From Haplodiscus bocki (lineage: Eukaryota): a DNA stretch of 64,000 bases. The notes beneath the pieces are model-generated. The model made no database searches, was not told where the DNA came from, and saw nothing but the letters and a program-made list of their open reading frames with translations. The position numbers and the translations under genes are program-made. This document shows positions 15,979-64,000 of this stretch, one piece after another (position 1 is the first letter of the stretch; the number at the start of each line of letters is the position of its first letter). The stretch covers positions 71,238,001 to 71,302,000 of the forward strand of contig OZ296656.1 in NCBI GenBank assembly GCA_965655095.1, in the 5' to 3' direction.

Positions 15979-16016
15979 ATCTGACGGTTCAACTTATATA
16001 AGTTGAGCCGTCAGAT
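15979..16016. repeat. 38-bp near-perfect palindrome ATCTGACGGTTCAACTTAT/ATAAGTTGAGCCGTCAGAT
   Basis: The 19-bp arms are reverse complements with one G-T mismatch. Confidence 0.9.
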
Positions 16017-28203: not shown

Positions 28204-28482
28204 GCCTAATTGTTGTGATATCGCTAACGATAGAGATAGCTCTTTGTGCTTGAATCACTAGCTTATCGTGACCATATTGGACAGGCTTCGCTCTGTTGGT
28301 CACCATTTCATCACTTTTTTGTGGTGCAAATCATTACTTCGAAATCGAAATCTTCTTGGTTATTCATTCTTCATTGTATTATTTCGCTTTGATTTACTTC
28401 GCTGCTTGTTCTGCAAGGCCAACGCAGTGTTCTCACGCTGTGAAGACTGAACTTGCTTCAGTGTTCATCTTCAAACGTGACC

Positions 28483-29802: not shown

Positions 29803-29832
29803 TCTTAGTTCTTATTTTTCTTTTATTTTGTA

Positions 29833-32800
29833 ATGAATGTCTTTTCATTGAATTGTCGAGGTCTGAAAGACCATAGACGTCTTCAAATAATTTTGAATCA
29901 ATGTATACGAAATCATTCAGACCTCGACAATCTTTGCATTTGCTTGCAAGAAACTCAGCTTTCTAACCTAACTAATAACCATCTAAAAATCCTGGCGCAC
30001 TATCATCCTTCATATGAGTTTTATCCTTCTGATGGTCAATCAGGAGGACTCATGACCATTTTTCCGGCTAATTACATACCGTTAAAAACGCATAAGTCAT
30101 CTAACACAATAAGTATCCATTTCTCTCAACATAATTTCACACTAACAAACACGTACATTAAACCAACTGACTACCACCTCCAACAATTTTTAACAGATAT
30201 CCTTGCTATTGAGCAATTTCACTGCGACACTCATATCATATGTGGTGACTTCAATGCGTTGCCATCATCTGACTGCACTAGCAACCGTCAAGTCGCAAAT
30301 AATGATTTCCGTCTTCTCAGATATCACCGTATTCTTGACATTTTACATATTCTTCATGTGGTACGTGTTGAACCTCAATCACCATCGACTAAATTTACAC
30401 ACTATGATAAAAGAACTAGCTCTGCTAGTCAAATTGACCATTTTTTCACTTCCCAACCTCACTATGTATATGGTACAACAAAAATTTTCTTTTCTGATCA
30501 TACTCTTCTCTCTCTAGAAATTTCTAAGGTAACTATGACAGGTACTAGCTACTGGAAACTTAATGACAATGCATCGCAACATGATGAATATATCACGAGC
30601 ATCATCTTTGATTCTCTACACACCTCTCACAATCAGAATAACTTCGACTTACATCATTATGATCTTGTTAAAAACAAAATGCGAGATGGTCTTCGTTCTC
30701 TATGCATTTTCTTACATAAACAAGCACTTTATGAGGAACGATACTTGCTTACCGAAATTTCAAAGATCGAAAATCACATCTCCAGTAATCGTGCTGACCC
30801 TGTACTAATTAAACATTTGTCAACTTTAAACTCGCAATTCTTGCACTATCAAAGGCCAAAAAAGACTATTAGCAGATCAAACAATATTTTACCGATTGTC
30901 ATCATGGAGACGCACAATCTGCTCACGTCGGCAAAAATCCAACATTGAATCACTTGACTTGCCAGATGGCTCTACCACATCCAACATTGACAAAATCTTC
31001 GAGGAATTCCATACCCATTTTTCTCAACGATTCACACAATCAACCCATACAACATCCGATCCCACTTCTCACTTTTCCAACATTCATAACATTTTACAAC
31101 CATTTCTAACAACACACAGGAATGCAATACAAAATAATATCGCTCAAAACTCAGATCATTTACAAGTGACAGAGCAAGAAGTGGAAGAGGCAATTAAAAA
31201 ACTTAACCCACATAGTGCTCCAGGATTAGATGGTTTAACATCTAACTTTTACAAAGCTCATGCAAATTTTTTTATTCCCTACCTAACTACCATTTTTAAC
31301 CTAATAATTTTACATAACTGGGTTCCTGAATCCTTCACACGAACAGTGATTAAGTTAATACCGAAAAAACCGGTTCCGCGTACGGTCGAAGATTACCGTC
31401 CGATTAGCCTTATCAATACGGATCAAAAAATTTTATCTCATCTTCTCTCTAGTCGCCTGAAAAACTCCTTAATCTCGCTCATCGGCTCTCACCAAACAGC
31501 GTACCTTCCTCAGCGAAATATTCACTCCTCTCTTACCCAAGTTAATCTTAACCTAGAACAGCTCGCTAATGATCATTGTCTGGTCGCCTGTGATTTTAGC
31601 AAAGCCTTCGATAAACTTGACCGCACCTATCTTTTTGCTCTCCTAGAGCAGATAGGCCTCCATCCGTCAACTCTTGGTCTAATCAGAGCAATGTATCAAC
31701 ATACTGATGCTTTTCTTGATATCAATGGTTCGCTCTCTCCCATTATCCATATGACAAGTGGTGTCCTTCGAGGTTGTCCACTTTCTGCTCTTCTGTTCAT
31801 CATGGGCATCGAGCCTTTTTTTCATCTTCAAAACAATTCCTCCATTCAACCAACTAGTCCTTTTAAAATCGTAGCATATGCAGACGATATTACGTGCTGT
31901 CTCAAAATCAACAGCCTTCAACTTCTTTTTCCTACTATGAATGAATTCTCGTTGGTTACAATACTGTATCTGAACCTTCAGAAAACAGATTCTATGTTCT
32001 GGATTACTTCCAACTGGGTTTCAGTCGGTCTCTAGTATCAAAATTTTAGGTGTCCATTTTTCTTTAAGCAATCTAGCAATTCAACTGAACTCCGCCATTC
32101 TGCTGGCACATAAATCACGATCTTTCTGTAATCCATATAACACCATTATTGCTCGTGCCAAAAATATTGAGACATTTGTAATGCAAAAACTCATTCATCA
32201 GGTTCGCCATAAATATGTGTTGAAATCTCAACTGGAACGAATTGATAATATCTTTGTTGATTCGATCTGGTTGGGACGTAAACATAATCTGAAGAAAACT
32301 ATCCTACAAAAGCCATGGGCCTCTATGGGAATTGATCATAAAAATTTCACCCAAGTTATTACGGCCGCCAAAACTATTGACTATAAGAATTTTCTTTACT
32401 CCAATCCTACAAACAATCAATACAGCCTCTTTCGTCGTTCCACACTGTACACCAATTTAAGACGCCTTCTGCGAACCTGCAATTGTACAAAAACTACTGA
32501 AGTTTTTTCTCAAATATCTCTCCGAAAATCATCTCAAATCTTGGTGCTCACTCCATTAACACGTATTCGTGAAGTATATCGTTTTCTTAGCTTCACTAAT
32601 ACTCATGATTCTTTCTTGCGTCTCACACAACTTGCGTCTCGCCTCAATTATCAGCCTGATTTGATCTTTTTATTCTTGCCGCGTCTATGGAAGCACAAAG
32701 CGTATGCGGCATTTGAGAAAAACTATCTCTATCAGTTTTTCATGAACTGTTACATGGATAAAACCACTAAATTCGAACATGGTTGGAGTGAAACTCCTTT

Positions 32801-33059
32801 TTGCTGTTTCTGCGGCTCTGCTGAAGAAACTTTCCACCATCTCTTATCAGAATGTCCGAACATTCCTTATCTGAACTTCTTTCCAGCCACAGGTCATCCG
32901 CAGCTCAACTTCCAGCTCCTTAATGATTTTTATCCCTTTAAACGGCTCATCGCTCTTCTTATTTGTTCGTGGAGCAGCGACTCGCACAAATTTCAAAAAT
33001 ATTTCATAAACTGTGTGAAACTCAGGAACCCAACTATTAGTCTAAATATTAACCTCTGA
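29833..33059 (+). pseudogene. E7 ORF2 EN-RT, disrupted
   Basis: EN and RT motifs (GDFN, SDH, CDFSKAFD, YADD) split by frameshifts near 30850 and 31990. Confidence 0.92.
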
Positions 33060-33750
33060 ACATGTTAAACTCAGCCTTCATTGTAACCAAGTTTCGACGT
33101 GTAAATGTACAATTTCTGATGTCTGATTTCCAATTCCTGATTTACATAAATTTGCATTTTGATAGCGATACTTTAAGGAATTAATTCTTTAAAAGCCTAA
33201 TTGTTGTGATATTGCGTTGTTGTGATATTAATTGTTGTGATAATACCAGTGAGGAAATTTCCGAGGTAGGTCATTTTCAAGCTGTGCTTAGTTAATCTCT
33301 TGGCTTTAAGAGTTGCTAGCAAGCTCACTTGGCTGAAACACAACGTTTCCCTTGAATTCCGTGTCGTGTGGACTCGCAAGCCTCGAGCTTGTGCTACGGC
33401 GCTCGCTGGCGTAAACCCTTGCAGGAGGGTGATAAGCAGGAGTGTTTCCACCCAATCGTGAGCTGTTCGGCAGGCCCTGAGACACCTGACCAAGAGAACA
33501 GCACGGTTGAGATAGAGTTGGCAGGTCCCAACCAGTAGTCATCCAAAAGCTGGTTGGAAGAACAACGATTTCTTGTTAATCGTGTCACCCTAAACTTTAC
33601 TTAGGGTCCCTTATCCCTTTCAGGAGTTTTCCCCTTTCTTCAAATTCTTCCCCATTAAAACTGTTGCGGAAACTCCAGCTAGCGAAAGTTACTGGTTTTT
33701 CTTTTTTTTACTTTCTTATCGACTTTGTTATCAATCAACTTAACTTTAAA

Positions 33751-43521: not shown

Positions 43522-45287
43522 GCCTAATTGTTGTGATATCGCTTACGATTGCTTGCTTGAATCTAGCTGATTGCGCGCATAGATTGGCTGTCTCCTGTTG
43601 ATTGAGGATTCGTTACGTCTTGTGGTTCTCATTTCATCACATTTTTTGGGGTGAAAAACATTACTTCGAAATCTTCTTGCTTATTAATTCTTATTCATTG
43701 TTACATTTCGCTTTGCTTTACATCGCTGCTTGTTCTGAACGGTCAACGCAGTGTCCTCACCCTGTGAATACTGAACTTGATTCAGTTTCAGCACCACAAT
43801 TCAACAATGGAACGACCACAGGCCCTGACCGACAATGTTTCTCTCTGTCCTCCACTGAATATTGGCCCTTCCGAAATGGCACGACAATGTCAAATGAAAC
43901 TTGAACAACAAAGAATACAATTCTACAATAACCAAGGAACTTTATCTTGCAACCAAGAAACGAACAGCAACATCACCCAAGCACTTCTGCACCCAAGTTA
44001 CTCTGGCTTTACTTCTAACAATACTCCTCCACCAAGAACCATGAACATCAGAAACTCAAGATTATTCCACCGTTTAACAAAGACCACTTCGCAACCAAGG
44101 AAACCTTCGAAACAGCTTCCAATCAATGTAATTCTGCTATTCTACGTCAATTCTCGCCGCAACTACGAACCAAGCTAACACTGTCAAAAACTTTCACTAT
44201 GTTCGGAACCCGAAGGTTACATAACTTTCACCTCGTGGGTTCAAATGAAGCCTCTGATGTTTTCACTCGACTCCAGTCAACTGGGATTGAAATGTTGGGA
44301 AGGACGGTTATTCCACAGAGTGACTCTTTCGAGCGTTTCATCCCTGGTATCTACCCGAAGCATGTTCCTGTTCGTATCCTTCAACTACCATCACTCTGTC
44401 AAGACAAGAACTGCAAGACATTCTAGACGTACCTGACTCAACCCAAATTACTTCTATTCGACACGACACCGAGGAGATTGATGGCATGCACTTCTACAAT
44501 GGACGGGCTTCAGCCATGATTCGTGTGGTCTCTCACGAACACGAAGAGATGCTGCGTGAATGGTCTATTAGAAACCATGAAAACGGAACACTGACGTGGA
44601 ACGACATTCCCATCTACGCCTTCATCCCTGCTCTGCACCAGTGTCACCATTGCAAAGAGCACAGACGGCCCTTCCATGGGCACGATGTGGCATGGTGTCG
44701 GTATGCCAGAGCAGAAGAACAACAAAGAACAATAACTCCTTCAACTAATTGCAACCAAGAAGTCTCCGTTCCACCAAGCAACCAAGCCACAACACTAGAT
44801 GACACGACTCCAACTACTGACGAAACAAATGCAATGAACGTGAGTCAAGATGAAACTTCCGACAGCAACCAAGATAACACTGACAACCAAGTAGACATTG
44901 ACACAGATAACGAAGATGATGATGATCCTCAACGCCCATGGCAAACCGCACCAACACACCCAAGAAAAACAGCATCTGCAACCAAGTCTCAATCTCAAGA
45001 AAACCAAGAGGAAAGCTGACCACAACAAAGCACGACTGTTCATGGCGAAGAATCTTGCGCTTCAGACGCCTGCAACCAAGAAGAAGAAACCAACCAAATG
45101 ATCTTTTTCTTGCACGCAACTAAGATTTCTAACATAACTAATAACTGCTAAATATTAATCTATGAAATTGTGAAACTAAACTTTGATTGTAACTACGTTT
45201 TGTACAATATTTCTGATTTCTGATGTCTTATTTCTGATTTCTGATAACTCTCATTTTGTTAAAGATACTTTAATGAATTCTTTTAAA
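43522..45287 (+). mobile_element. E10: family A internally deleted element (frameshifted ORF1, ORF2 almost entirely lost, 3' UTR kept)
   Basis: ORF1 43807-45101, then ~35 nt matching early ORF2 (AACTAAGATTTCTAACATAACTAATAAC) fused to the ORF2 end (CTAAATATTAA) and an A-type 3' UTR. Confidence 0.88.
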
Positions 45288-48200
45288 GCCTAATTGTTGT
45301 GCTATTGCTGCTTACGTCATTTGAAAGTTTGCTATAGCATCGCTCTTTCTAGTGATAATAACAGCTAAAGCTGTGATTCATCACATCGCTTTTAACTTTA
45401 CGCTTCTTTATCATACTGTTTATATACAAAATATTAAACTTATCAAAATGCCAATACAGAATTTTATCAACTCTGCACACACAGCAAGAAGAAACAAATT
45501 CCTGAATAAAAACGACGAACACCCTGTCAAGTTCCCTCCGTATGAACCGGAAACTCCATTTATGAGTCTGGAGGACTTCAATAAACAAAACTCTTTAACC
45601 AATAAACAAAACAACATATCCATCTCAAATCAACTGGAAGCCGGTTTGCCACAAACTTCAACCACTGAAATCGTCCCACCGGCACCCGACAACAGCCCAG
45701 AATCGTGCCCGCCTAAGACTTCTGTAACTTCAAATGGATTTGCACCCTTGGCTACACAATTACAAACTGCTGCCGAACAACAACCGAATGCTGACGAGCA
45801 CGTACGAATAGAAAAAAACGCTGATATTAACTCTTGAATCTTCTCGAACTCTGCCTCCACCCTCATTTAGCGAAACTGTCAAAGGAAATGTTTCACCAGT
45901 AGCAAGAACCCAGAAAATTATCCGTATGAAAGTGGTACCCCCATTTAGAAAGGAACACTTCCAAAATCCGAACCTTTTGGAACGAGATGTGGATGCGGCA
46001 ATAAGAGAAATCTACACAATCTTCAAACCGAAATACCGTCACCAAGTTACGATTTCAAGAACAAACGTAGCACAACACAATCGCAACTTACAAATCTTAA
46101 TGGTTACTGCACCTGCAGAAGCAGAGGAGGACATTGCTTTTGCAAAATTAAGAGGAATCAGCATAATGGGGAAGACAGTCTTTCCAACTGGGGAGGAGTT
46201 TTGGCGATTCTTTCCGGGGGAATTCCCGAAAAGAGCGATGCTGCGAATCAGCAACCTACCAATTCTGCTAGACGATGAAGAATTAGAAGAGCTGCTCGAG
46301 CTTCCTCCATGTACAGAAATTGGAGGCGACATCCTCAGGGAGCAGAAAACGTATGACTTCGGAAAAATTTATACAGGAAGAGCTATGATACCCATAACCA
46401 TTTCGTCACAACAGCACCAAGATCAGCTTCTTAAATGGTCCTTATGGAGGAATACTAATGGCAAACTCAGCTGGAACGAAGTACCCCTCATGATGTCGAT
46501 CCCAAAACTCCACAAATGTACACAATGCGAACAAGAAGGAAGACCCCAGTACATCGGGCATGATGATCTCTGGTGTCGTATCATCAGAAGACAAACTACC
46601 CAGACACCACCAGCGGAAACAGAAGACATATATGATCCACCAGAGGTAAGTGAAACGCAACATGAACCCCATCAACCCGCCATAGAGGAAAGCAACAATC
46701 AGTCAGATACTACCAACAATGATAATGAGCCAGAACAACAAAACATGGAGAACAAAGATGATGATAGCAGTGCAGAAACTGGACGAAGTGACAGCGAAGC
46801 AGCGGACGATCAACAGCAAACGTCCTCTACTACAAACAAGAAGAGGAAAAGGAAGAAATCCCGTAAGAGACAAATCGCAAACAGTTGCGCATCATCGTCA
46901 AAAGCTCCAAAAACTCGAAATAAAAACGGTAATAATGTGTCATAACTTCTTTGAGAAATCAGTAGATTTCTTTTCTTTAAATGTGAGAGGTCTCAGCAAT
47001 CCTGAACGTCTCACAGAGGTATGCAACATGACAAAAAACCAAAGTCATAGTAACTAAAAAGTTATTGCATTACAAGAAACAAAGCTATCAAAAACGAAGG
47101 AGGAACATGAAAAAATCTTGGAAAAGTTTGGTTTTTCCTATGAAATGGTACCTGCAAATGGAAATTCAGGGGGTCTCATGATATTATACCCAAATACATT
47201 TAATGTAACCCCAATTGTAAAAAATGAAAACATGCTAGCCATTGATCTAAGTCATAATGGGTGTGACACTCTAATAATAGCAAATATATATATATTAACC
47301 CAAAGGACCACAAAATCGCCAACCTGGAGGCGGCTTTTGCTGAAATAGAACATGAGAAAAACATTATTGCTATGGGTGATTTTAATGCAATTGATCCTTT
47401 TCAAAGTCCTTTAAATAAAAACCCCCAAAATCAAATGATGTAAGAATCTTGCGTTACAACAAAATAACCCAGATTTTTGCCAGTCAAAAAATGTTTGATA
47501 TTGGAAAAACTTTAAGTGTAACAGAATCACCCATTATGACAAAAGAACAAGAACTAGCAATCGTATTGATTATTTTTTTCGGAAACATCAGTTACCAAAA
47601 CTGTGAGATGTTTCTCTATACAACCTCATTCTCAGACCATAAATGCTTACATTTGGCATATCATGTTCTACATGAAACCCATGGAAATGGAAGTTGGAAA
47701 CTAAATTATGAAGTTCTAGAGAATAAAACCCTGATAACCTCACTACTGAATCGAAACTATGAAAACAATTCCTTTTCAGTAAAATACTATGATATTTTCA
47801 AGTCAAGGATTAGAGATAGTCTGAGACTGATTTGTATCCAAAATGCAAAGAAAAAGAAAATTACGGAAAAACAATTGATGAAAGAGGTTGAAGTCTCTGA
47901 GAAACATCTCTCGAGAAAAATTCAAATTGAACTCAAAGATCTGAGAGAGCATGAAGAAAAAATATTGAAACTCAAAACATTTCAACAGTCTGAAGCGCAA
48001 TTAATTGCGAAATCGATCAAAAACTTCTATCATGATATCAATGAAGGTGACCCAAAAAGTACAAAAAACTTAGTGAGATGTCTAGAAAGCAAAAATGAAA
48101 TCCGTAAAATCATCAGAACGGGTGAAGTAGTTACAAATGAAAACGAAATTGTAGACAAGTTTGCAGAGTTTTTTCAAGAATGTTATAAAGAAAACCCACC

Positions 48201-50344: not shown

Positions 50345-50455
50345 GCCTAATTGTTGTGATACTGCCTCGTTACTCTGCTGGACGAGAGAGTTTATTTACA
50401 CAGCGCCATATCACTAATCTTGCAGTGAAATCTGCAAAATTTGAGCAAGTGCAAG

Positions 50456-51926
50456 ATGACTAATCTGAACACGAACGAGCTTGATAATAAAAGTTACAAA
50501 AATGTTCTTGATTCCTCTTCGAATTCGACCTCAAATTCTGAAAATTTGCCAATTGTCATTAACTTTGCTTTACCGCTGACAGTGGAAATTCTTAAGAACT
50601 ACAAATTGCTTGATAAAATCTTTGTTGAAGCTGTTATTGCTGTAAAAAAAAACAATTAAACTCCAATGAAATTACCATCTTCAAAAGTACAATTTTGCGA
50701 AACAAAGGCAATTTGAAATGCATTACCGTTATCATTCCTGCCAAGCTTGAAAATGCAGCTACTTCACTTATTTATGATGGCATTACAATTCGTGAACGAC
50801 AAATACGGCCTTATTCTGTTCAACACTCCAACCCAAACAACAGTGCCTATCCACAAAAAGATTACCGATTTCATTCCGAAACGTTCCTCACTTCTTGAAT
50901 GACAACGATATTTTGCAAAACTGTGGTCTTCAAAGCTTCACATTTGGCAGCAAGATTATTCACCAACAACGGAAACTCTCTGATGGCGGCCTGTTTTTCA
51001 CTGGGGAAGCGAGAACAACAGTCTTGATCAACAATGAAGATGAGGAAAGTTTACTTCAGAACTGGGCCAACTCAGCATATGACAAAATCTTCCTTTGTAG
51101 TGGCGTTTACTTCAAGTGTTGCTGTATTCCACTCATCCAATGCCCTCTATGCGCTAGTGACAACCTACCCAGTGCACATCATCACTCAAGATGCCCAAAA
51201 CAACCACCAGAAGAAAGCCAAATGAGAACTGATGAACAAAGTCCAAACGAGAAAGTATCAACAGACTGTGTTATGGGAACTTCAGAAACAGTGTCAATGC
51301 ACAAGGAACGTGAAATTTCAGCCTCTGAAGATGAAGAACCAATCTCCAAAGCAGGCCGATGAAGCTGCTGAAACAGAGACAAGTGACAGTGATGAGGAGC
51401 TATCAACAGCAGAACAAAGTGATGATCTCGCAGAAAAAGATGTAACTCCCACTCCAGAACCCAAACCAGAGCAAAAGACAACCCATTCAACCACTGCACT
51501 TCCCGCAAGATCTGAATGGACCAGTGAACGAGGTTATCCTTATAAGCCAGCTGCAGAACAGAAGTATCCATTCTTTTTAGAAGAGAGTCAGAACAAAATT
51601 TTAACACCCGAAATCATTTTCAAACAAATTTCTTCTATGAAAGAATATTTGAATAAAACTTGTCAAACCTCTGGAACCATCAATCTTTTAGATGAAGATA
51701 AAGAAGTTTCAAATTAGTACAGCCGCTTAAAAGATCTAAAGTTGAAGAACTTTTTAGTCAATCCAACTGGAAAGCTAATGACTCTGATGATATTTTAGCT
51801 TCACATTTTCAATTTTATACAACTATTAGGAAATTTGACCCCTTCTATGATGCGAAAACACGTCAAATTTTCACAATCAACCTGCTGAATAGAATTGTGA
51901 AAACTTTTACGCCGGTAAAACCGTGA
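50456..51926 (+). pseudogene. E12 divergent ORF1-like protein with extra C-terminal domain, frameshifted
   Basis: Stitched fragments give GITIRERQIRPY, AYP, FFTGEART, CPLC-x8-H-x4-C, acidic linker, then LVQPL..EELF..FTINLLNRIVKTFT. Confidence 0.75.
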
Positions 51927-52316
51927 AATAGTCTTTGAAATAATGTAACCAAAAGATGAAAAACTGCGAACTTTTGACTTGACAAACCATTTATTTTCTA
52001 CAAAACTTTCAATAGAAACCTACAACTTACAAGTCTTTCAAACATCCTTATTAGACCTTCTGAAGGTTCAGACTTTAATTAAACTCCAAAACCTCTGTTA
52101 GGAGTAAACCGTAACTTTGCAACATAGTTTTCCATAACTCTAGACTATATCATACCGACTTTCACCATTCACTTTATAGTATAACCAACATCCCTCCATA
52201 TGAAAGTGCTGTTTATTTCTTTGAATGGTGCTTCTTACTATATAAAACTTCCCATATTTATACTTTACCTACCTACATAAAAACTTTGATGTTACTTGTG
52301 AATTTATAGACTGCAT

Positions 52317-52332
52317 AATAAATTCTTTAAAA
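52317..52332 (+). terminator. Conserved unit-end motif AATAAATTCTTTAAAA, poly(A)-signal-like hexamer plus fixed short A run (representative copy of 13)
   Basis: Variants at 4588, 10991, 23152, 28188, 33179, 38426, 43506, 45272, 50329, 57657, 59315, 61302. Confidence 0.75.
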
Positions 52333-52518
52333 GCCTAATTGTTGTGATAGCGTTACTCTGTCAGAGAATTAACTTTGTTTGTTTAACGCCATTCTTGCAA
52401 AACCTTGCAGCTCTTGCAAATTTTGAGCAAAATTGAGATACCGAACGAACTTGTTTCTCAAGTTGTGATTTAAGTTTCGTTATTTCCTTCGCTTTCATTT
52501 TGTTTTTTACCTTACAAA

Positions 52519-54241
52519 ATGCCATTACAAAAACATAACTTTCTCAGGAAGAACACAGGACCTCCGGTCAGATTCCCCGCATATGAACCCAAAACACCAT
52601 TTATAAGCCTAGAAGAATTCAACAAACAACAAGCACCAGAATATTCAAAAGAAAATTTCCCACAAGTCTCAACATCCAAGAATGACACTTTACAACAACC
52701 CAGAAGTAAATGGCAGACAAAAAAATTGTACATTCCAAAATTTCGAAAACGATCCGATAACGTATTCAAGCAACCAGAAAATTACCCGCAACTCAACAAC
52801 AAACAACATTGTGGCTGCTAACAGCAATGAAATGCCCATAGAACAATGTGAGAGCTCGGTGCCAAAGTACAATCAACCAGCCAATGCCCAAAATACTGAA
52901 CACTGTGAGTGTGATGAAGTAAACAGTCAACACCCAAAATCAAATTGTCACAACTCTGACATTGCTTCATCTGCCATTTCAGAGCAAGGGCATCAGCAAT
53001 CTTGCTCTTCTACTCCTGAGCAGATAACTGCAGAAACTGTTGCTCCTCCTCTCGTGGAGAAAGCTGCTGGAAATGCTCCTTCCTTCAGTGATAAAGTGAA
53101 ACAGACAAATAGTTACAAAGAGTACAGAAGATAACGTATCCTGCGGATGAAGGTGGTTCCACCCTTCCGAAGGGAACACTTCCTGGATAGACAAAAAATG
53201 GAATCTGACGTGAATGCTGCAATTAGAGAAATCCTCTGCATATTCCATCCAAAGTTCAGACCAATGGTCACCATTTCACGTACTAATTTAACTCAACTAA
53301 ATCGGAACATCCAGATACTAATGGTAACGGCACCCGAAGAAGCAGAGGAAGACCTAGCTAGAGCGAAGTTAAATGGAATTCAGATAATGGGGAAGACGGT
53401 GTTTCCGACAGGAGAAGAATTCTGGACATTCTTGCCTTCAGAATTCCCAAAGAGAGCATTGCTGCGTGTCAATAATCTCCCAATACTTTGCACTGACGAA
53501 GAGTTAGAAGAGCTCATGGAGTTGCCAGCGGACATAAAACTTACAGGTGATCTCCTACGGGAATCAGAAGAGACCGAACTGGGCAGACTGTTTACAGGAC
53601 GGGCAATGGTTCCTATTATCATACCATCAAAAAAACACGAGAACTTAGTTAAACAATGGTCAATACGCAAGAACTCAGAGAATATTACCATCTGGAACGA
53701 GGTTCCAATTTATATGAGTGTGCCCAGCCTGCATAAATGCAGGTTATGCGAACAAGAGGGCAGGAGACAAGTGATTGGCCATGATGAAAAATGGTGCCGA
53801 ATCGTCCGCCAGACAACGAAACCCCTGGAAGAAGAAGCTCAAACTCATGAAAGCGTGGAAAATGAAGTGCAAATGGTGCCTCAAAACGAACAAACCAAAG
53901 AAAGTGAGATGCAACAGAACAGTACACCTGCAGACGACTATCACAATGTCTCTCATACCCCGGCCTCCGATGATGACAATGACGAAACAGTAGCAACTAA
54001 TCCAAATAATTCAGAAGATGACGTTGTCTCTCATACCTCTTCCTCCGATGATGACAATAATGAAACAGTAGCAACTAATCAAAACAGCGACCATGATGGA
54101 AGGAAAAGAAACTGGCAGGAAGTGAAAAAGAAGAAAAGAAAGAGAAGTAATAAGTCAACAAAATCATTGAACAGTGGCAAAGCAACAAATTCAACAGAAT
54201 ACCCGGTGAGGAAAAGTCTGAACTTAAACTCAAATGGCTAG
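52519..54241 (+). pseudogene. E13 ORF1, disrupted upstream of the conserved core (53147-54241 open)
   Basis: N-terminus FPAYEPKTPFISLEEFNKQ aligns with E11 FPPYEPETPFMSLEDFNKQ; core MKVVPPFRREHF...CRLC-x10-H-x4-C. Confidence 0.82.
53947..54080 (+). repeat. Two-copy 78-bp in-frame repeat in E13 ORF1 (VSHT..SDDDN.ETVATN); also at ~62932-63065
   Basis: Visible in both DNA and translation. Confidence 0.85.
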
Positions 54242-57200
54242 TTTCTCCTTCTTGCAGCCTGTAGACTGCTTTTCTTGTAATATAAGGGGTCTGAAAAATC
54301 CGGAACGTTTAGTAGAAATTTGTGACATTGTTAAAAACAAAAGTAAAAGTAAAAATAACATAATAACCATACAGGAAACAAAAATACAAAATCTAAAGGA
54401 GGAACATAAAAGAGTCTTGAAAAATTTTAAACTTACTTATGAGATTGTACCTGCCAGGGGAACCGCTGGAGGTCTTTTAACCCTGTTTCCAGAATCACTA
54501 AACGTAAAACCCGTTATAAAAACTGATAATGTGTTAGCTCTTGCTCTGAATCAAAATGGTCCAATAATTTGTAATGTTTATATCAACCCAAAAGATTACC
54601 ATATGAAGGCCTTCGAAATTGCTTGTGAGGACCTTCGTGAAATATCGGATAATGGAATTCTCTTTATGGGTGACTTCAATGCCATCGAACCCAATCAACA
54701 CTACGATAAAGAAAAAATGTTCCCAAAAAACAATGATATCAGAATTACCAGATATCTCCGAATTTCTCGATTTCTAAACTTTTTTAATGCTTTTGACCTA
54801 GGAAAAACCCTAAGTATGATGGAAGCCACTCATTTTGATAAAAGAACAAGAGCTAACACAAGAATTGACTACTTCTTTGGAAACATCAATGTTCAAAATT
54901 CGAAAATGTTTCTACACTCAACCTCTTTCTCCGATCATAAATGCCTTCATCTTACCTATTTTATGAATGAAAATCAAATCGGAAATGGTTCGTGGAAGTT
55001 AAACAATGAGATTTTGCTGAAGGAAGCTGAAATAAAGGAGATAATACTGAACTGTTTTGAAAAAACCTCAGATATGGCGAGAAAATATGATTTATATAAG
55101 TCAAAACTTAGAGACCTCTTGCGTCTGCTATGTATTCGAAATGCAAAAGAAGAGAAATTTTTGGGTTTAAAAGTGGAGAGAGAGGTTGAGTTTTCAACTA
55201 AAAACCTGCAATCCAAAAAAGTTTGTTCGAAAAGTGATCTGGAAAATCATGAAGAAAAAGTAGAAAAACTGAAAACTTTTCAGGCTACCAGAGCAAAAGT
55301 GATTCTTCATTCTATAAAAAATTTTTATATGGATGTTAATGAAGGTGATCCAAAATCAACAAAATCAACGTTGAGAATTTTTGCAGAAAAACGCGAAATA
55401 AGAAAAGTCATCAACTCAGAAGGTGTGCCCATTGAAGATGAAAACGACATTCTTGATGAATTTGCCAGATACTTTGAAAAATGCTACAAACGGCCAAACG
55501 ATAGCAAAAAAATGGATCAAAAACTGTATGTAAGGAAGAAACACCTTCACAAATTTTTTAAAAAGAACAGAACGATACTTGAAGACTATAAGCTTCAGAA
55601 TGAAATCCAAAATGATGATGACAAGCCAATAACAGAATTTGAAGTCGAAAAAGCAGTTATGAAGCTGAATAGCAAAAGTGCTCCTGGATCGGATGGTCTA
55701 ACCTCTGACCTATATAAAACCCAAAAAGAAGTGTTTATACCCATTTTGACGGAATTATTTAATAAGATCCATGAGACTCAATATGTTCCTCCTTCTTTTA
55801 AACAAGCGATCATAAAACTGATACCAAAAAAGCCCAACAATGTAAACATAGAAAATTTCCGTCCAATCAGTCTGATCAACACTGATCAGAAAATTCTATC
55901 ACACATCATAGCAGAAAGGCTGCGCAAGGTCCTAAATGTGTTAATTGGGAGGCATCAAACTGCTCACTTGACAAACAGGAACATTAATACATCATTAATG
56001 AAACTACAAAAGTTCGCAACAGAAATGTCAAAAAGAGAAGGTATAGTAGCACTTGATTTTAATAAAGCTTTTGACAAAGTAAATAGGGAATACTTAATGG
56101 AGATGATAGGACGCCTTCCTTTAGATCGTCAAACAAAAAATATCATTAACAAGACTTATGAGGAGACAATTGCTTTGATAAATATCAGAGGCTCTTTCTC
56201 CCTTCCTTTCAAAACTGAAACCGGTGTTCGACAAGGCTGTCCCATGTCAGCACTAATGCTCAATCTTGCAATCGAACCGCTACTACAACGTATTCAAAAC
56301 ACCAACTTTATCAAATCCTCTCAAGAAATTAAATCGATAGCCTTCGCCGATGATATCTCTATATGTATGTACACAAGCTCGATCGGAAATCTCTTTGCAA
56401 TTCTCAAAGACTTTGCGGATATGTCTGATTTAACAGTTAATATCGACAAAAGTAAAACGCTCACAGCTGGCAAAATGTATAAAGAGGAAAAATGGAAGCT
56501 ACAAAAAGTAAAACGAGCAAAAATACTAGGTTTATATATAAATGTTGGCGGAAAACTAGATAATGAAACAAAGAATGAAATGATGAGTACAGCTTTGAAA
56601 ACTTCCCAGTTCATGGGACCCACACTTTCTTTGCATGCAAGAGCAAAAAACATTGAGACCTTTATCGTTCCCAAACTCATATATTCTCTGAGGCACTATC
56701 CAAAATCCAAATCGTTCATGAAAAAACTGAATGCGGTAATCATTAATCAATTATGGTTAGACAAAAAACACAATGTTAATCAAGAAATCGTCAACACACC
56801 ACATCAACAAGGGGGTATAGGTTTGAGAAACCTACAAAAATTAATATTTACAGCCAAGTTGATGGATTTAAAAAACTTAGCGTTTTGTGATCTTGAGAAA
56901 TCCTTTGTTCCCACGTACAAAAACTCAAAAGCTTTCAGTAATCTGTTGAATGATCTAAAACACGATGGTATTGAAATATTAGAGTTCGACATTAGAAGTG
57001 TATCCTTTAATTTCTTCTTCCAAAGCTTTGAAGTGACCGAAAAAACAACCTTCAAAGAAATATATAAATTCTTGATAGAATCAATCATCGCAATTACATG
57101 TTTCAAAAATATTAACATGACTGCAATGAAACTCAATATTTCTCCCAATATCATAATGGACTTCATTAAAAAGCTTTGGAAGAACAAGAGACTAAAATCC

Positions 57201-57506
57201 TTTGATAAAAACATTCTGTATAACTTTCTAATGAACTCATATCTTGAGAAACAAGAAAAATGGTTAAAACAATTAGTCCCGCATCCACTATGCTTCGCAT
57301 GTGGTGAAAAATTTGAAACGTGGGATCACCTATTGTTTGAATGCCGTGAATTTTCCAAGACTCGTAACTTACTAAAACTAAAAAACTGGTCAGATGTCTT
57401 TACAGACAAGACTGGCCTAGCACCCAAACTTTTAGTAGTAGTAGCTGTAGTACTATCATCACGGACAGAGGAAAAAGGTAACTACTTTCAATTTCTAACG
57501 AAATAA
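54234..57506 (+). CDS. E13 ORF2: intact 1090-aa APE endonuclease / reverse transcriptase / zinc-finger protein (L1/Tx1 type)
   Basis: CNIRGL, IQET, GDFN, THFDKRT..TRIDY, SDH; APGSDG, RPISLINTDQKI, HQ, LDFNKAFD, GVRQGCPMS, FADD, GGIGL; CFAC..ETWDHLLFEC. Confidence 0.95.
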   Translation: MASFSFLQPVDCFSCNIRGLKNPERLVEICDIVKNKSKSKNNIITIQETKIQNLKEEHKRVLKNFKLTYEIVPARGTAGGLLTLFPESLNVKPVIKTDNVLALALNQNGPIICNVYINPKDYHMKAFEIACEDLREISDNGILFMGDFNAIEPNQHYDKEKMFPKNNDIRITRYLRISRFLNFFNAFDLGKTLSMMEATHFDKRTRANTRIDYFFGNINVQNSKMFLHSTSFSDHKCLHLTYFMNENQIGNGSWKLNNEILLKEAEIKEIILNCFEKTSDMARKYDLYKSKLRDLLRLLCIRNAKEEKFLGLKVEREVEFSTKNLQSKKVCSKSDLENHEEKVEKLKTFQATRAKVILHSIKNFYMDVNEGDPKSTKSTLRIFAEKREIRKVINSEGVPIEDENDILDEFARYFEKCYKRPNDSKKMDQKLYVRKKHLHKFFKKNRTILEDYKLQNEIQNDDDKPITEFEVEKAVMKLNSKSAPGSDGLTSDLYKTQKEVFIPILTELFNKIHETQYVPPSFKQAIIKLIPKKPNNVNIENFRPISLINTDQKILSHIIAERLRKVLNVLIGRHQTAHLTNRNINTSLMKLQKFATEMSKREGIVALDFNKAFDKVNREYLMEMIGRLPLDRQTKNIINKTYEETIALINIRGSFSLPFKTETGVRQGCPMSALMLNLAIEPLLQRIQNTNFIKSSQEIKSIAFADDISICMYTSSIGNLFAILKDFADMSDLTVNIDKSKTLTAGKMYKEEKWKLQKVKRAKILGLYINVGGKLDNETKNEMMSTALKTSQFMGPTLSLHARAKNIETFIVPKLIYSLRHYPKSKSFMKKLNAVIINQLWLDKKHNVNQEIVNTPHQQGGIGLRNLQKLIFTAKLMDLKNLAFCDLEKSFVPTYKNSKAFSNLLNDLKHDGIEILEFDIRSVSFNFFFQSFEVTEKTTFKEIYKFLIESIIAITCFKNINMTAMKLNISPNIIMDFIKKLWKNKRLKSFDKNILYNFLMNSYLEKQEKWLKQLVPHPLCFACGEKFETWDHLLFECREFSKTRNLLKLKNWSDVFTDKTGLAPKLLVVVAVVLSSRTEEKGNYFQFLTK

Positions 57507-57672
57507 GACAACGATACTAAGTTGCATCTTCCATTACAGACCCCTAAACTTTTCATCCTTTATATTTTTACATCCTTTACTTGACATTTATTTACGTTCT
57601 CATTTATTTATTTACTTTCAAATTGTTTGATTACTTGTAGATTCAGATTTGGTTATAATAAATTCTTTAAAA

Positions 57673-59330
57673 GCCTTGTTGTGATAGCGCGAGGCGAAAC
57701 GCTGCCGGATTTAATTTTGGCCTATTTTCGTCCAATCGCTGCTAACTTTGCAAATTATTCGCAAAATGTCTTTGTTGAATTCAAAGCAAGAACGAAATTA
57801 TGCTCAAAGTGTTAATGAAGCCACAGCAAATTTAGCAGCTTCTGTTCCTATCATTGTACGTTTTGTTTTACCAATTCCAAAAGAATTTAATGGCAGATTA
57901 CTCGACAAACTGTTCTTAGAGTCTATTGTTGCCGTCCAAAATTGCTTACCACGTGAACAAGCTGCACAAACTACAATATTTAAATGCACAATCCAACGAA
58001 AACGAGGAAAATTGAAGGCAATTACCGTAATTTTCCCCTCAAATTTGCGGAAAGATGCGACAGATTTGTTAACTAGAGGTATTATCATGAATGGCAGAAC
58101 CATTCCTCCTTATTCAATTCACGACCCGTCAAATTCAGATGCTGATTATCCAAAACATTTTCGAATTTCGTTCAGAAACATGCCGCATTGCTTATCAAAG
58201 GAAGATATTGTTACATCTTGTGGATTGGAATCTTTCAAAATGGGAGAAATTATACATCAGCAGAGACGCCTGCCAAACGGAAGCCTGTTTTACACAGGTT
58301 TGCCCAGAGTTGACGCCATTATTGAAAATTTAGATGAAAAAAAAACAGACTCAAAGAGTGGTCCAAAGATGCCTTTCAACAAAGTTTCTACTGCAATGGT
58401 GCAATATTTCAATGTTACTGCCCTGCCTTCGCAACTAATTCGGAAAAAGCCTCTGAAAAGCAAAACCAACAACCACCCCCACAAAAGAAGCAAGCTACAG
58501 AACACATGGCCCCAGAGCAACAAGCAGAATCTACTATTGAGTCTCAGCAAGAACAAACAGATTCCGTTACCATAACTTCGACTGAAGAAGTTGCATGTGA
58601 AATTGAAGCAGTACAACCTGAACAAGATGCCCAAGAAATGGAATGTCACTCTTCTTCTGAGGAAGAAACGCCTGAAAATGATACGCAAACCGAACTTGCC
58701 TCCAAAATCCAGAAACGACAAAAGTCGACCCATTATTTTGACCTCATTAGAAGACAAATATTCGATGAAAAGACTATGCTGAGAACCTATCCAGAAGCAC
58801 AATCCCTCATAGAGGAACAACACCATATTAGAATTGAAGATGACAACCAAAAGTGCTTAAACGAGCTGTTTTTAGTACAAGTTTTAACAGAACAAGAAGA
58901 ACTCTTTGATAATTTCAAAATTTTCAATGGTGGAACTAGTATTGATTCATACTATAAATTTGTAGAAGTTAGACGAAGATATGCTGTAAATTTGGAGCGC
59001 GAAGCCTTAAATCTTTTCTGTGCTAACCTTTTTGGTCATGTGAAATGTACATTTACCCTAAGAAAAATTCCTTCCTTTCAGAACTGAAAAATGAGATTTT
59101 GAGAACCTTTAAACTTCTTGATTTTTCCACAAAAAAAATACATACTACTCTAGATCCAAATTCTTTTTGAGTACAATTTGCATCTTTTCAATCAGGCTTT
59201 TTTTGGAGCTACACTCTCATACACATGAAACTATAGTGCATCACTCAATTTAATTGTACTATGAACATACTTATATACTAAATTTTATAGTATTGGTAAA
59301 TTTGTAGTCTCCTTAATAAATTCTTCAAAA
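57673..59330 (+). mobile_element. E14: family E non-autonomous ORF1-only element (~1.66 kb)
   Basis: Motif variant GCCTTGTTGTGATA; single frameshifted ORF 57766-59087; ends AATAAATTCTTCAAAA; no EN or RT. Confidence 0.85.
57766..59087 (+). pseudogene. E14 divergent ORF1-like protein with extra C-terminal domain, frameshifted
   Basis: GIIMNGRTIPPY, YPKHFRISFRNMP, FYTG align with the ORF1 cores; LLDKLFLES and IIHQQRRL align with family D. Confidence 0.75.
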
Positions 59331-61317
59331 GCCCCATTGTTGTGATACTGCCTCGTTACTCTGCTGGACGAGAAATTTTATTTACACAGCGCCATATTAC
59401 TAATCTTGCAGTGAAATCTGCAAAATTTGAGCAAGTGCAAGATGACTTACCTGAAGACGAACGAGCTTGATAATAATAGTTACAAAAATGTTCTTGATTC
59501 CTCTTCGAATTCGACCTCAAATTCTGAAAATTTGCCAATTGTCATTAACTTTGCTTTACCGCTGACAGTGGAAATTCCTAAGAACTACAAATTGCTTGAT
59601 AAAATCTTTGTTGAAGCTGTTATTGCTGTAAAAAAAACAATTAAACTCCAATGAAATTACCATCTTCAAAAGTACAATTTTGCGAAACAAAGGCAATTTG
59701 AAATGCATTACCGTTATCATTCCTGCCAAGCTTGAAAATGCAGCTACTTCACTTATTTATGATGGCATTACAATTCGTGAACGACAAATACGGCCTTATT
59801 CTGTTCAACACTCCAACCCAAACAACAGTGCCTATCCACAAAAAGATTACCGATTTCATTCCGAAACGTTCCTCACTTCTTGAATGACAACGATATTTTG
59901 CAAAACTGTGGTCTTCAAAGCTTCACATTTGGCAGCAAGATTATTCACCAACAACGGAAACTCTCTGATGGCGGCCTGTTTTTCACTGGGGAAGCGAGAA
60001 CAACAGTCTTGATCAACAATGAAGATGAGGAAAGTTTACTTCAGAACTGGGCCAACTCAGCATATGACAAAATCTTCCTTTGTAGTGGCGTTTACTTCAA
60101 GTGTTGCTGTATTCCACTCATCCAATGCCCTCTATGCGCTAGTGACAACCTACCCAGTGCACATCATCACTCAAGATGCCCAAAACAACCACCAGAAGAA
60201 AGCCAAATGAGAACTGATGAACAAAGTCCAAACGAGAAAGTATCAACAGACTGTGTTATGGGAACTTCAGAAACAGTGTCAATGCACAAGGAACGTGAAA
60301 TTTCAGCCTCTGAAGATGAAGAACCAATCTCCAAAGCAGGCCGATGAAGCTGCTGAAACAGAGACAAGTGACAGTGATGAGGAGCTATCAACAGCAGAAC
60401 AAAGTGATGATCTCGCAGAAAAAGATGTAACTCCCACTCCAGAACCCAAACCAGAGCAAAAGACAACCCATTCAACCACTGCACTTCCCGCAAGATCTGA
60501 ATGGACCAGTGAACGAGGTTATCCTTATAAGCCAGCTGCAGAACAGAAGTATCCATTCTTTTTAGAAGAGAGTCAGAACAAAATTTTAACACCCGAAATC
60601 ATTTTCAAACAAATTTCTTCTATGAAAGAATATTTGAATAAAACTTGTCAAACCTCTGGAACCATCAATCTTTTAGATGAAGATAAAGAAGTTTCAAATT
60701 AGTACAGCCGCTTAAAAGATCTAAAGTTGAAGAACTTTTTAGTCAATCCAACTGGAAAGCTAATGACTCTGATGATATTTTAGCTTCACATTTTCAATTT
60801 TATACAACTATTAGGAAATTTGACCCCTTCTATGATGCGAAAACACGTCAAATTTTCACAATCAACCTGCTGAATAGAATTGTGAAAACTTTTACGCCGG
60901 TAAAACCGTGAAATAGTCTTTGAAATAATGTAACCAAAAGATGAAAAACTGCGAACTTTTGACTTGACAAACCATTTATTTTCTACAAAACTTTCAATAG
61001 AAACCTACAACTTACAAGTCTTTCAAACATCCTTATTAGACCTTCTGAAGGTTCAGACTTTAATTAAACTCCAAAACCTCTGTTAGGAGTAAACCGTAAC
61101 TTTGCAACATAGTTTTCCATAACTCTAGACTATATCATACCGACTTTCACCATTCACTTTATAGTATAACCAACATCCCTCCATATGAAAGTGCTGTTTA
61201 TTTCTTTGAATGGTGCTTCTTACTATATAAAACTTCCCATATTTATACTTTACCTACCTACATAAAAACTTTGATGTTACTTGTGAATTTATAGACTGCA
61301 TAATAAATTCTTTAAAA
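59331..61317 (+). mobile_element. E15: family D ORF1-only element, copy of E12
   Basis: Same ORF fragments as E12 at offset 8985; motif variant GCCCCATTGTTGTGATA. Confidence 0.87.
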
Positions 61318-64000
61318 GCCTAATTGTTGTGATAGCGTTACTCTGTCAGAGAATTAACTTTGTTTGTTTAACGCCATTCTTGCAAAACCTTGCAGCTCTT
61401 GCAAATTTTGAGCAAAATTGAGATACCGAACGAACTTGTTTCTCAAGTTGTGATTTAAGTTTCGTTATTTCCTTCGCTTTCATTTTGTTTTTTACCTTAC
61501 AAAATGCCATTACAAAAACATAACTTTCTCAGGAAGAACACAGGACCTCCGGTCAGATTCCCCGCATATGAACCCAAAACACCATTTATAAGCCTAGAAG
61601 AATTCAACAAACAACAAGCACCAGAATATTCAAAAGAAAATTTCCCACAAGTCTCAACATCCAAGAATGACACTTTACAACAACCCAGAAGTAAATGGCA
61701 GACAAAAAAATTGTACATTCCAAAATTTCGAAAACGATCCGATAACGTATTCAAGCAACCAGAAAATTACCCGCAACTCAACAACAAACAACATTGTGGC
61801 TGCTAACAGCAATGAAATGCCCATAGAACAATGTGAGAGCTCGGTGCCAAAGTACAATCAACCAGCCAATGCCCAAAATACTGAACACTGTGAGTGTGAT
61901 GAAGTAAACAGTCAACACCCAAAATCAAATTGTCACAACTCTGACATTGCTTCATCTGCCATTTCAGAGCAAGGGCATCAGCAATCTTGCTCTTCTACTC
62001 CTGAGCAGATAACTGCAGAAACTGTTGCTCCTCCTCTCGTGGAGAAAGCTGCTGGAAATGCTCCTTCCTTCAGTGATAAAGTGAAACAGACAAATAGTTA
62101 CAAAGAGTACAGAAGATAACGTATCCTGCGGATGAAGGTGGTTCCACCCTTCCGAAGGGAACACTTCCTGGATAGACAAAAAATGGAATCTGACGTGAAT
62201 GCTGCAATTAGAGAAATCCTCTGCATATTCCATCCAAAGTTCAGACCAATGGTCACCATTTCACGTACTAATTTAACTCAACTAAATCGGAACATCCAGA
62301 TACTAATGGTAACGGCACCCGAAGAAGCAGAGGAAGACCTAGCTAGAGCGAAGTTAAATGGAATTCAGATAATGGGGAAGACGGTGTTTCCGACAGGAGA
62401 AGAATTCTGGACATTCTTGCCTGCAGAATTCCCAAAGAGAGCATTGCTGCGTGTCAATAATCTCCCAATACTTTGCACTGACGAAGAGTTAGAAGAGCTC
62501 ATGGAGTTGCCAGCGGACATAAAACTTACAGGTGATCTCCTACGGGAATCAGAAGAGACCGAACTGGGCAGACTGTTTACAGGACGGGCAATGGTTCCTA
62601 TTATCATACCATCAAAAAAACACGAGAACTTAGTTAAACAATGGTCAATACGCAAGAACTCAGAGAATATTACCATCTGGAACGAGGTTCCAATTTATAT
62701 GAGTGTGCCCAGCCTGCATAAATGCAGGTTATGCGAACAAGAGGGCAGGAGACAAGTGATTGGCCATGATGAAAAATGGTGCCGAATCGTCCGCCAGACA
62801 ACGAAACCCCTGGAAGAAGAAGCTCAAACTCATGAAAGCGTGGAAAATGAAGTGCAAATGGTGCCTCAAAACGAACAAACCAAAGAAAGTGAGATGCAAC
62901 AGAACAGTACACCTGCAGACGACTATCACAATGTCTCTCATACCCCGGCCTCCGATGATGACAATGACGAAACAGTAGCAACTAATCCAAATAATTCAGA
63001 AGATGACGTTGTCTCTCATACCTCTTCCTCCGATGATGACAATAATGAAACAGTAGCAACTAATCAAAACAGCGACCATGATGGAAGGAAAAGAAACTGG
63101 CAGGAAGTGAAAAAGAAGAAAAGAAAGAGAAGTAATAAGTCAACAAAATCATTGAACAGTGGCAAAGCAACAAATTCAACAGAATACCCGGTGAGGAAAA
63201 GTCTGAACTTAAACTCAAATGGCTAGTTTCTCCTTCTTGCAGCCTGTAGACTGCTTTTCTTGTAATATAAGGGGTCTGAAAAATCCGGAACGTTTAGTAG
63301 AAATTTGTGACATTGTTAAAAACAAAAGTAAAAGTAAAAATAACATAATAACCATACAGGAAACAAAAATACAAAATCTAAAGGAGGAACATAAAAGAGT
63401 CTTGAAAAATTTTAAACTTACTTATGAGATTGTACCTGCCAGGGGAACCGCTGGAGGTCTTTTAACCCTGTTTCCAGAATCACTAAACGTAAAACCCGTT
63501 ATAAAAACTGATAATGTGTTAGCTCTTGCTCTGAATCAAAATGGTCCAATAATTTGTAATGTTTATATCAACCCAAAAGATTACCATATGAAGGCCTTCG
63601 AAATTGCTTGTGAGGACCTTCGTGAAATATCGGATAATGGAATTCTCTTTATGGGTGACTTCAATGCCATCGAACCCAATCAACACTACGATAAAGAAAA
63701 AATGTTCCCAAAAAACAATGATATCAGAATTACCAGATATCTCCGAATTTCTCGATTTCTAAACTTTTTTAATGCTTTTGACCTAGGAAAAACCCTAAGT
63801 ATGATGGAAGCCACTCATTTTGATAAAAGAACAAGAGCTAACACAAGAATTGACTACTTCTTTGGAAACATCAATGTTCAAAATTCGAAAATGTTTCTAC
63901 ACTCAACCTCTTTCTCCGATCATAAATGCCTTCATCTTACCTATTTTATGAATGAAAATCAAATCGGAAATGGTTCGTGGAAGTTAAACAATGAGATTTT
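61318..64000 (+). mobile_element. E16: family B4 element, copy of E13, runs off the window
   Basis: ORF1 61504-63226 with the same lesions as E13; ORF2 starts at 63219 (MASFSFLQ) and is open to the window end. Confidence 0.93.
63219..64000 (+). CDS. E16 ORF2 5' part (APE endonuclease domain), partial
   Basis: Matches 54234-55015; absent from the ORF track because it has no stop inside the window. Confidence 0.88.
   Translation, partial: MASFSFLQPVDCFSCNIRGLKNPERLVEICDIVKNKSKSKNNIITIQETKIQNLKEEHKRVLKNFKLTYEIVPARGTAGGLLTLFPESLNVKPVIKTDNVLALALNQNGPIICNVYINPKDYHMKAFEIACEDLREISDNGILFMGDFNAIEPNQHYDKEKMFPKNNDIRITRYLRISRFLNFFNAFDLGKTLSMMEATHFDKRTRANTRIDYFFGNINVQNSKMFLHSTSFSDHKCLHLTYFMNENQIGNGSWKLNNEI

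Follow-up and report, generated by a model that had tools for sequence, protein, structure and literature searches.

The 64-kb window analysed here, taken from Haplodiscus bocki (contig OZ296656.1 of assembly GCA_965655095.1, positions 71,238,001 to 71,302,000), is a single-direction chain of non-long-terminal-repeat retrotransposons, all of them on the plus strand. The units E12, E14 and E15 of this chain encode no reverse transcriptase (RT). We propose that the two lineages to which they belong, D (E12 and E15) and E (E14), probably form one old clade of non-autonomous derivatives of long interspersed nuclear elements (LINEs), which would be moved in trans and which carry an extra C-terminal domain under selection. 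The protein of these units was important for lineage survival, its extra domain included. The case for such a lineage rests on relatives in other loci, the window copies being relics.

No RT, endonuclease or other Pfam match was found in the open reading frame (ORF) pieces of E12, E15 and E14, and a profile of ORF2 run against 445 six-frame segments of eight RT-less units gave a best E-value of 0.6. In contrast, the N-terminal part of the RT-less proteins matched the ORF1 proteins of the autonomous elements in a profile-profile comparison (hhalign, frame breaks bridged with X; 97.7 %, E 2e-12, 155 columns). Homology between the N-terminal parts of E12 and E14 is shown by tblastn (7e-31). As DNA, the two units have only their last 69 nt in common, and neither matches any autonomous unit. 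A previous sequence-only reading of the window had claimed that these units encode nothing but a divergent ORF1, and our comparisons bear this out: judged by profile, the RT-less units encode a true, very divergent LINE ORF1. All follow one plan of 1.6-2.0 kb, with a short 5' untranslated region (UTR), about 440 codons, a 3' UTR and a shared last 16 nt. The coding part opens with a core of the ORF1 type; a CCHC knuckle, frequently degenerate, comes next, then an acidic linker and a basic patch, and a domain of about 110 aa closes the protein. In an unrooted maximum-likelihood tree of the ORF1 cores, in which the row of a third lineage, F (see below), is long, 5/5 RT-less units lie on one side of a 100/100 branch and nine autonomous ORF1s on the other. 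This branch is longer than any among the nine autonomous ORF1s. The tree is consistent with one old origin of the RT-less clade.

The C-terminal domain is lacking in the autonomous elements examined here, as had been noticed before. The same reading had placed D in a frame at 51711-51926 that the ORF list had missed and described D and E as alignable at the protein level but strongly diverged. Both statements hold. BLASTP missed the alignment, but Smith-Waterman comparison of D and E gave a score of 59, against 26 +/- 4.3 for shuffled sequences (0/2000 shuffles reached 59), and the two were reciprocal best matches among 1392 six-frame segments. Moreover, a profile built from the relatives of E without D found D at E 3e-5, and D was the only sequence other than the E relatives that passed the HMMER inclusion threshold.

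Using the 249-aa second piece of E14 as query against three assemblies of the European Nucleotide Archive (ENA), we found ten related proteins, all of them (10/10) in units without RT; in every locus the domain was confined to RT-less units of 1.4-2 kb. The relatives in loci L001, L002 and L005 share 86-92 % DNA identity with E14, those in L003 and L009 70 % over the first 750 nt and the one in L006 73 %, while L004 shows 48 % protein identity in the domain. The L001 copy, 92 % identical to E14 and 5'-truncated at element position 379, comes from the same species, because its differences from E14 occur in the reads of this organism; the E copy in L002 lies in another array and has many stops. 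L007 (6724-8710) holds a full-length D copy, 89 % identical to E12 over 2 kb, which is free of three of the four breaks of E12 and carries lesions of its own. In the second assembly, the 1.97-kb E-type unit of L003 has a 443-codon frame with one TAG, and that of L009 has an intact 443-codon ORF (P0013, L009 6001-7332). An intact copy, on which the sequence-only reading had made its proposal depend, therefore exists, and it is flanked by a perfect target-site duplication. L008 contains a further E-type unit as well as the deeply diverged third lineage F (7829-9427), a unit in which an intact CCHC knuckle and a short linker accompany the domain. The domain of D and that of F have insertions and motifs in common that set them apart from the E lineages.

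Selection on these proteins was estimated from the ratio of non-synonymous to synonymous change (dN/dS), using Nei-Gojobori counts on gap-free codons. In the D lineage (E12 versus L007), dN/dS was 0.13 (p 0.0016) and 0.20 (p 0.0009) in the core, 0.68 and not significant in the acidic linker, and 0.26 (p 0.003; 12 synonymous and 14 non-synonymous changes) in the domain. In the E lineage (E14 versus L001) the core gave 0.09 and the domain 0.44 (p 0.03), whereas the comparison of E14 with the dead L002 copy gave 1.08 for the domain. Between lineages the synonymous sites are saturated, with a proportion of synonymous differences (pS) of 0.65-0.80; the proportion of non-synonymous differences (pN) among the E lineages was 0.20 in the core and 0.28-0.37 in the domain, and D and E differ by a pN of 0.48 and a pS of 0.71. 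These counts indicate that the domain has been under long constraint, somewhat weaker than that on the core and far stronger than that on the linker, in line with the purifying selection that had been suspected; between close copies its dN/dS (0.26-0.44) is well below 1.

The domain belongs to no Pfam family, has no sequence relative in the PDB (best E 0.18) and gave no usable Atlas match. A first structure model, built from 7 sequences, was useless, with a predicted local distance difference test score (pLDDT) of 43.8. The AlphaFold2 model from ten sequences reached a mean pLDDT of 77.6 and a predicted template modelling (TM) score of 0.65, with blocks of 85-93 over residues 31-100. The predicted structure is a compact alpha/beta domain, in which a low-confidence hairpin is followed by a helix-strand-strand-helix unit and then by three strands. 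Fold searches with this model stayed within noise and returned a best E of 0.36 in the PDB (Foldseek) and 0.05 in a viral library, a best Z of 3.6 in a wide PDB search, on halves of acetyltransferases, and a TM score of 0.51 on a pentapeptide-repeat protein in the Atlas, which is not usable. The structural check proposed with the original observation has thus yielded a confident core and no matching known fold; the absence of a fold match is no proof of a new fold. In the literature searched, no counterpart of such a conserved added domain is described.

The site of insertion was identified by means of the spliced leader (SL). The SL of the acoel Symsagittifera roscoffensis is GCCTAATTGTTGTGATAAACTTATTAAATAGA (PMC9911081), and the 17-mer found at the junctions of the chain is identical to its nt 1-17. 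Loci L003, L008 and L009 contain tandem arrays of genuine SL genes with a repeat of about 905 bp, in which GTAAGT comes after the 31-nt exon sequence GCCTAATTGTTGTGATAAACTTATTAAATAG. Single elements in these arrays are placed after nt 17, with the promoter and nt 1-17 before them and nt 1-17 with the remainder of the gene after them. As SL nt 1-17 stand on both sides of the solo insertions, the 17-mer is a target-site duplication. Of the two terminal motifs that the units had been said to keep, the 3' one is the tail of the autonomous elements, but the 5' one belongs to the target and not to the element. Three solo insertions illustrate this: L009 5925-7895, a 1.97-kb insertion in an SL gene array with a perfect 17-bp duplication; L003 5211-7181, in an SL gene with a 17-bp duplication; and the F unit of L008, also in an SL gene, whose upstream 17-mer has one mismatch. 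A fourth copy (L001 9968-11390) is 5'-truncated and lies at a non-SL site with a 16-bp duplication, CATTGCGTTGGCGCGA. For the L004 copy, a target-site duplication was looked for and not found. The 5' truncation and the own duplications are the signature of target-primed reverse transcription, and the units move singly. Since the units carrying this signature have no RT, the enzyme must have been supplied in trans. The earlier suggestion of an old lineage mobilised in trans is upheld by these duplication-flanked solo insertions, and the ORF1 tree agrees with it.

Within the window, the 3' motif was matched 13 times (0.27 expected) and the 5' motif 17 times (3.2 expected), and the joints across the chain read ...AAATTCTTYAAAA-GCC-TAA-TTGTTGTGATA...; four of these joints are covered by the units E12 to E15. 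Many read contigs go on past TTGTTGTGATA into sequence close to the SL remainder, as loose ends at 61334. The array is a pile-up of LINEs in SL RNA genes and not a telomere. A telomeric array is ruled out by the SL-gene target and by the position of the arrays internal to contigs. Acquisition of the SL motif through trans-splicing of the element RNA is likewise ruled out, as only nt 1-17 are present and these flank the units on both sides as a duplication.

The putative helpers stand in the same chain. E13, whose ORF1 and ORF2 overlap by 8 nt, is an intact autonomous element; its ORF2 aligns with human L1 ORF2p over residues 12-872 (E 2e-54), and the helpers are therefore assigned to the L1 group. 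A second autonomous family in the window has the same set of domains, namely apurinic/apyrimidinic endonuclease (APE), RT and zf-RVT. The endonuclease of the helpers is of the Exo_endo_phos (APE) type and not the restriction-like endonuclease that marks CRE and NeSL. The last 16 nt are common to E12, E14 and the E13/E11-type elements, with the consensus AATAAATTCTTYAAAA, and differ in the other families of the window. This points to the E13/E11 family as the probable helper, which would recognise the units through the shared 3' tail.

Taken as a mechanism, our proposal has the following steps. The D and E lineages would be branches of one old non-autonomous clade, whose units are inserted singly after nt 17 of the SL exon, duplicating 17 nt, and now and then elsewhere with 5' truncation. 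The element's own protein would coat its own RNA in cis, and the extra domain would provide what an RNA without RT lacks. The 17-bp duplication restores the target, and further hits on it produce the head-to-tail chain. LINE proteins favour the RNA that encoded them, which sets an RNA without a gene for ORF2p the problem of obtaining this protein, and here an old clade has kept a selected domain at the place where ORF2 began. Tentatively, the most likely role of the domain would be that of an adaptor to the ORF2p of the helper or to its ribonucleoprotein particle (RNP); the main alternative is that it may bind nucleic acid at the SL target. It is conceivable, and we put it no higher than that, that a previously unseen fold captures the helper's ORF2p or steers the particle to the SL gene. 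If true, this would be a stable two-partner system in SL arrays like that of HeT-A and TART, evolved independently, in the L1 group and outside the insects. The precisely defined 17-nt SL target offers, together with the selected domain, a small testable system with a single protein, domain, helper family and target.

Several observations weigh against this proposal. The window contains 0 intact copies, and the sole intact ORF comes from another assembly (ERZ25074608), whose SL spacer had no match in the window or in the L001, L002 and L007 loci. Read-derived contigs from four runs (two samples of one study) reproduce all breaks of E15, with A-run lengths of 8 and 9 only, both out of frame. 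The two D copies, E12/E15 and L007, share a frame change upstream of the domain, which is a poor fit to a single fused protein. Recognition of the tail by the helper is assumed because the tail sequences are identical, this being its sole basis, and conserved secondary structure was looked for in the 3' tail and not found. Finally, the role of the domain rests on position and selection only, with no match in sequence or fold.

The shared frame change is the starting point of the alternative that survives best. E12/E15 is read in five frame pieces, owing to an A-run at about 50640-50648, a 2-nt insertion at about 50852, the frame change at about 51357 and a 10-nt deletion after 51699. In the D lineage, the domain could be a separate second protein translated from an overlapping frame, like ORF1 and ORF2 of the helpers, and be fused to ORF1 only in the E lineage. 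E12/E15 and L007, 89 % identical, have the frame change in common without any indel between them, both keep the domain-frame ATG at 51331, 29 nt before the stop of ORF1 (51360-51362), and the domain downstream is still under the selection described above; the 8-nt overlap in E13 offers a parallel. However, independent D copies number only two, gene conversion among array copies could have spread a single lesion, and the F unit together with the whole E lineage indicates one frame. We regard two separate D proteins as rather unlikely, though well worth keeping in mind.

Less probable is that the extension is a remnant of ORF2, from the stretch between endonuclease and RT, left after an internal deletion that fused ORF1 to ORF2. 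The extension begins exactly where ORF2 of the helpers does, past the acidic linker and basic patch. A two-sequence profile of D and E, as well as D alone, aligns weakly to ORF2 at about 340-470 in three copies (E 0.03-0.65), pairwise z reaches 3.1, and the same stretch is again the top match of the ORF2 profile (E 0.6). That internal deletion yields ORF1-only units here is demonstrated by the unit at 43525-45290. None of these scores (0) is significant, however, and E14 alone shows nothing. Profile-profile comparison of the extension with the ORF2 linker of eight elements, with full ORF2 and with ORF1 gave E-values of 0.3, 0.57 and 0.85 over 10-14 columns at other places, and the richer profile of E relatives, which finds D, finds no ORF2. 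In addition, the domain is under purifying selection and predicted to fold independently. A decayed ORF2 fragment, which the sequence-only reading had named as a refutation, finds no support in these comparisons, and we consider such a remnant improbable; an ancient origin from ORF2 followed by a new use is possible.

It could also be argued that the units are inert deletion derivatives, alike through shared ancestry and copied by unequal crossing-over, not by a retrotransposition for which their own protein is needed. For the window copies this reading is true. They are dead relics, multiplied by segmental duplication of an 8985-bp block, which comprises E12, E13 and E14. Over 4666 bp, E12+E13 shares 99.79 % identity with E15+E16; E15 is therefore part of the duplicated block and no independent copy. 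All window copies and the majority of those elsewhere are broken, L008 also has a duplicated 2520-bp block of SL gene and unit, and in the second sample the defective D copy has a several-fold higher read depth, without any in-frame variant. For the lineage, by contrast, the reading is very improbable: there are solo insertions, including one at an unrelated site, that are flanked by duplications of their own, one 443-codon ORF is intact, and core and domain show a strong synonymous excess that the linker does not.

The idea that the host or the helpers have recruited an ORF1+domain gene to regulate SL-targeting LINEs, and that it is no longer mobile, would suit the long-lasting selection on the protein and its location in strongly transcribed SL arrays, but we consider it most improbable given the multiple copies with own duplications, the 5'-truncated copies, the retained LINE tail, the decay of most copies and the lack of a single conserved orthologous locus among those seen.

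With the proposed clade of RT-less riders in mind, several known systems can be compared. The units work like HeT-A and HAL1 and yet are members of neither. HeT-A encodes only Gag, lacks pol, is the array partner of RT-bearing elements, has a gag under negative selection and obtains RT in trans (PMC5537684). The present units resemble it in encoding ORF1/Gag only, in the purifying selection on this protein, in forming one-way head-to-tail arrays with autonomous elements and in their RT in trans. They differ in that HeT-A is added at chromosome ends, where nicking is thought unnecessary, whereas they sit at SL nt 17 with a 17-bp duplication, and in that their helpers belong to the L1 group by the match to human L1 ORF2p. 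The HeT-A group is part of the jockey clade, and to our knowledge HeT-A has no counterpart of the extra C-terminal domain. The label HeT-A-like, given in the sequence-only reading, is therefore apt as an analogy only, the target being an SL gene and not a chromosome end.

HAL1, a non-autonomous derivative of L1, codes for ORF1p alone and has several independent origins (PMC5753468). It is likewise an ORF1-only derivative in the L1 group, and the window unit at 43525-45290 is of the plain HAL1 kind. HAL1 is a simple deletion product that is dispersed and lacks site specificity, whereas the D/E/F clade has an added conserved domain and an SL target and would be one deep clade rather than a set of recurrent offshoots. 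We know of no ORF1-only element of flies or mammals that carries anything beyond ORF1.

SL exons are known targets of SLACS, CZAR and CRE in trypanosomatids and of NeSL in nematodes, and multicopy RNA genes have been described as a safe haven (PMC4640811). These elements and ours both insert at a single position of the SL exon in a tandem SL gene array; the former are early branching and have a restriction-like endonuclease, while the helpers here are of the APE type. No ORF1-only riders of SL-specific LINEs were found in the literature searched, and we know of none for SLACS, CZAR, CRE or NeSL. Two reports (PMC4640811, PMC4494074) describe the Tx1 clade as APE-type elements of the L1 group that hit multicopy small-RNA genes and have tail-sharing riders, short interspersed elements (SINEs). 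Putative helpers of the APE type and L1 group, this kind of target and riders with shared tails are found here as well. However, the Tx1 riders are non-coding SINEs, and the present riders keep a selected protein-coding gene. For the array itself, the analysis corrects the picture from a telomere to a pile-up in SL genes.

The features of the window on which this analysis is based are given in Table 1.

Table 1. Units, joints and coding regions of the E12-E15 part of the chain (window positions).
Feature	Position	Strand	Remarks
SL-derived 17-mer, target-site duplication before E12 (GCCTAATTGTTGTGATA)	50345-50361	+	= nt 1-17 of S. roscoffensis SL
E12, D-lineage RT-less unit, defective	50362-52332	+	3' UTR end = AATAAATTCTTTAAAA; 1.99 kb
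D-lineage ORF1 part (E12)	50456-51362	+	ATG 50456; core in three frame pieces, like an RNA recognition motif (RRM), and CCHC-type knuckle C-x2-C-x9-H-x4-C
D-lineage acidic linker and C-terminal domain (E12)	51331-51926	+	domain-frame ATG 51331; pre-domain in frame of 51232
D-lineage last 71 codons, third frame (E12)	51714-51926	+	behind 10-nt deletion after 51699
SL-derived 17-mer	52333-52349	+	between E12 and E13
E13, intact autonomous L1-group LINE, likely helper type	52350-57672	+	
E13 ORF1	53147-54241	+	364 aa
E13 ORF2	54234-57506	+	1090 aa; APE, RT and zf-RVT (Pfam)
SL-derived 14-mer, without TAA	57673-57686	+	between E13 and E14
E14, E-lineage RT-less unit, one frame break	57687-59330	+	1.66 kb
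E14 ORF1 core	57766-58345	+	ATG 57766; frame lost at A9 run
E14 second piece	58338-59087	+	degenerate knuckle, acidic linker, basic patch, C-terminal domain at about 58731-59084
SL-derived 17-mer	59331-59347	+	between E14 and E15
E15, segmental duplicate of E12, part of 8985-bp higher-order repeat	59348-61317	+	
SL-derived 17-mer	61318-61334	+	3' of E15

The frame breaks are genuine for E15, as the read contigs rule out assembly error as their cause. E14 has a single break, in the A9 run at 58337-58345, a position that L001 and P0013 pass in one frame. The run is 9 nt long in the window, occurs in the reads in variants shorter by 1 (8) and by 2, the in-frame form, and measures 6 in L002; this homopolymer is mutable and disrupts the frame time and again. 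The in-frame variant could be taken for an intact allele of E14, but this was ruled out, since the substitutions linked to it belong to the 5'-truncated L001 copy. A programmed -1 frameshift was also considered, since the A9 run forms a slippery heptamer and a shift of -1 would be required. We rejected it as unlikely: the runs differ by 1, 2 and 3 nt across copies and reads, which leads to different frames, and in-frame relatives lack the run.

All ten differences between the E12 and E15 blocks lie within the first 300 nt (50348-50644 versus 59334-59629), including the joint (TAA versus CCA), and the 4.4 kb beyond this stretch are identical in the 8985-bp copies. The clustering suggests a patch of conversion or recombination. 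In L008, the 2520-bp block of SL gene repeat and F-type unit stands twice in tandem (6914-11954); hence, unequal crossing-over also multiplies riders in the second assembly.

Further observations concern other parts of the chain. The unit at 43525-45290 (1.77 kb) derives from the second autonomous family by internal deletion; in the ORF1 region and the last 150 nt it shows 84 % identity to 28207-33197. This plain ORF1-only unit lacks the extra domain, is young and illustrates how ORF1-only units arise in the array. The chain is interrupted at 11440-17342. A 5' unit fragment (11010-11440, 97 % identical to 43525-43950) precedes the gap, which consists of about 5.9 kb without long ORFs; its unique DNA then meets a new SL 17-mer at 17343 and does not resemble the SL gene spacer found in the second assembly. 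A search of the window for known RNA genes found none. At one joint (33195-33245), three partial SL starts (TTGTTGTGATA) follow each other 15-16 nt apart, as if by repeated aborted insertions or slippage at the target.

Outside the window, the duplication flanking the truncated L001 copy lies at 9952-9967 and 11378-11393, and its sequence CATTGCGTTGGCGCGA is loosely like the SL target (ATTG..GTTG.G). This hints that the helper nuclease keeps some sequence preference outside SL genes. In L002 (5011-5902), a LINE chain contains a complete 31-nt SL that runs directly into an ORF with DUF4172 and Fic domains. This stretch looks like a trans-spliced host mRNA that was retrocopied by the LINE machinery.

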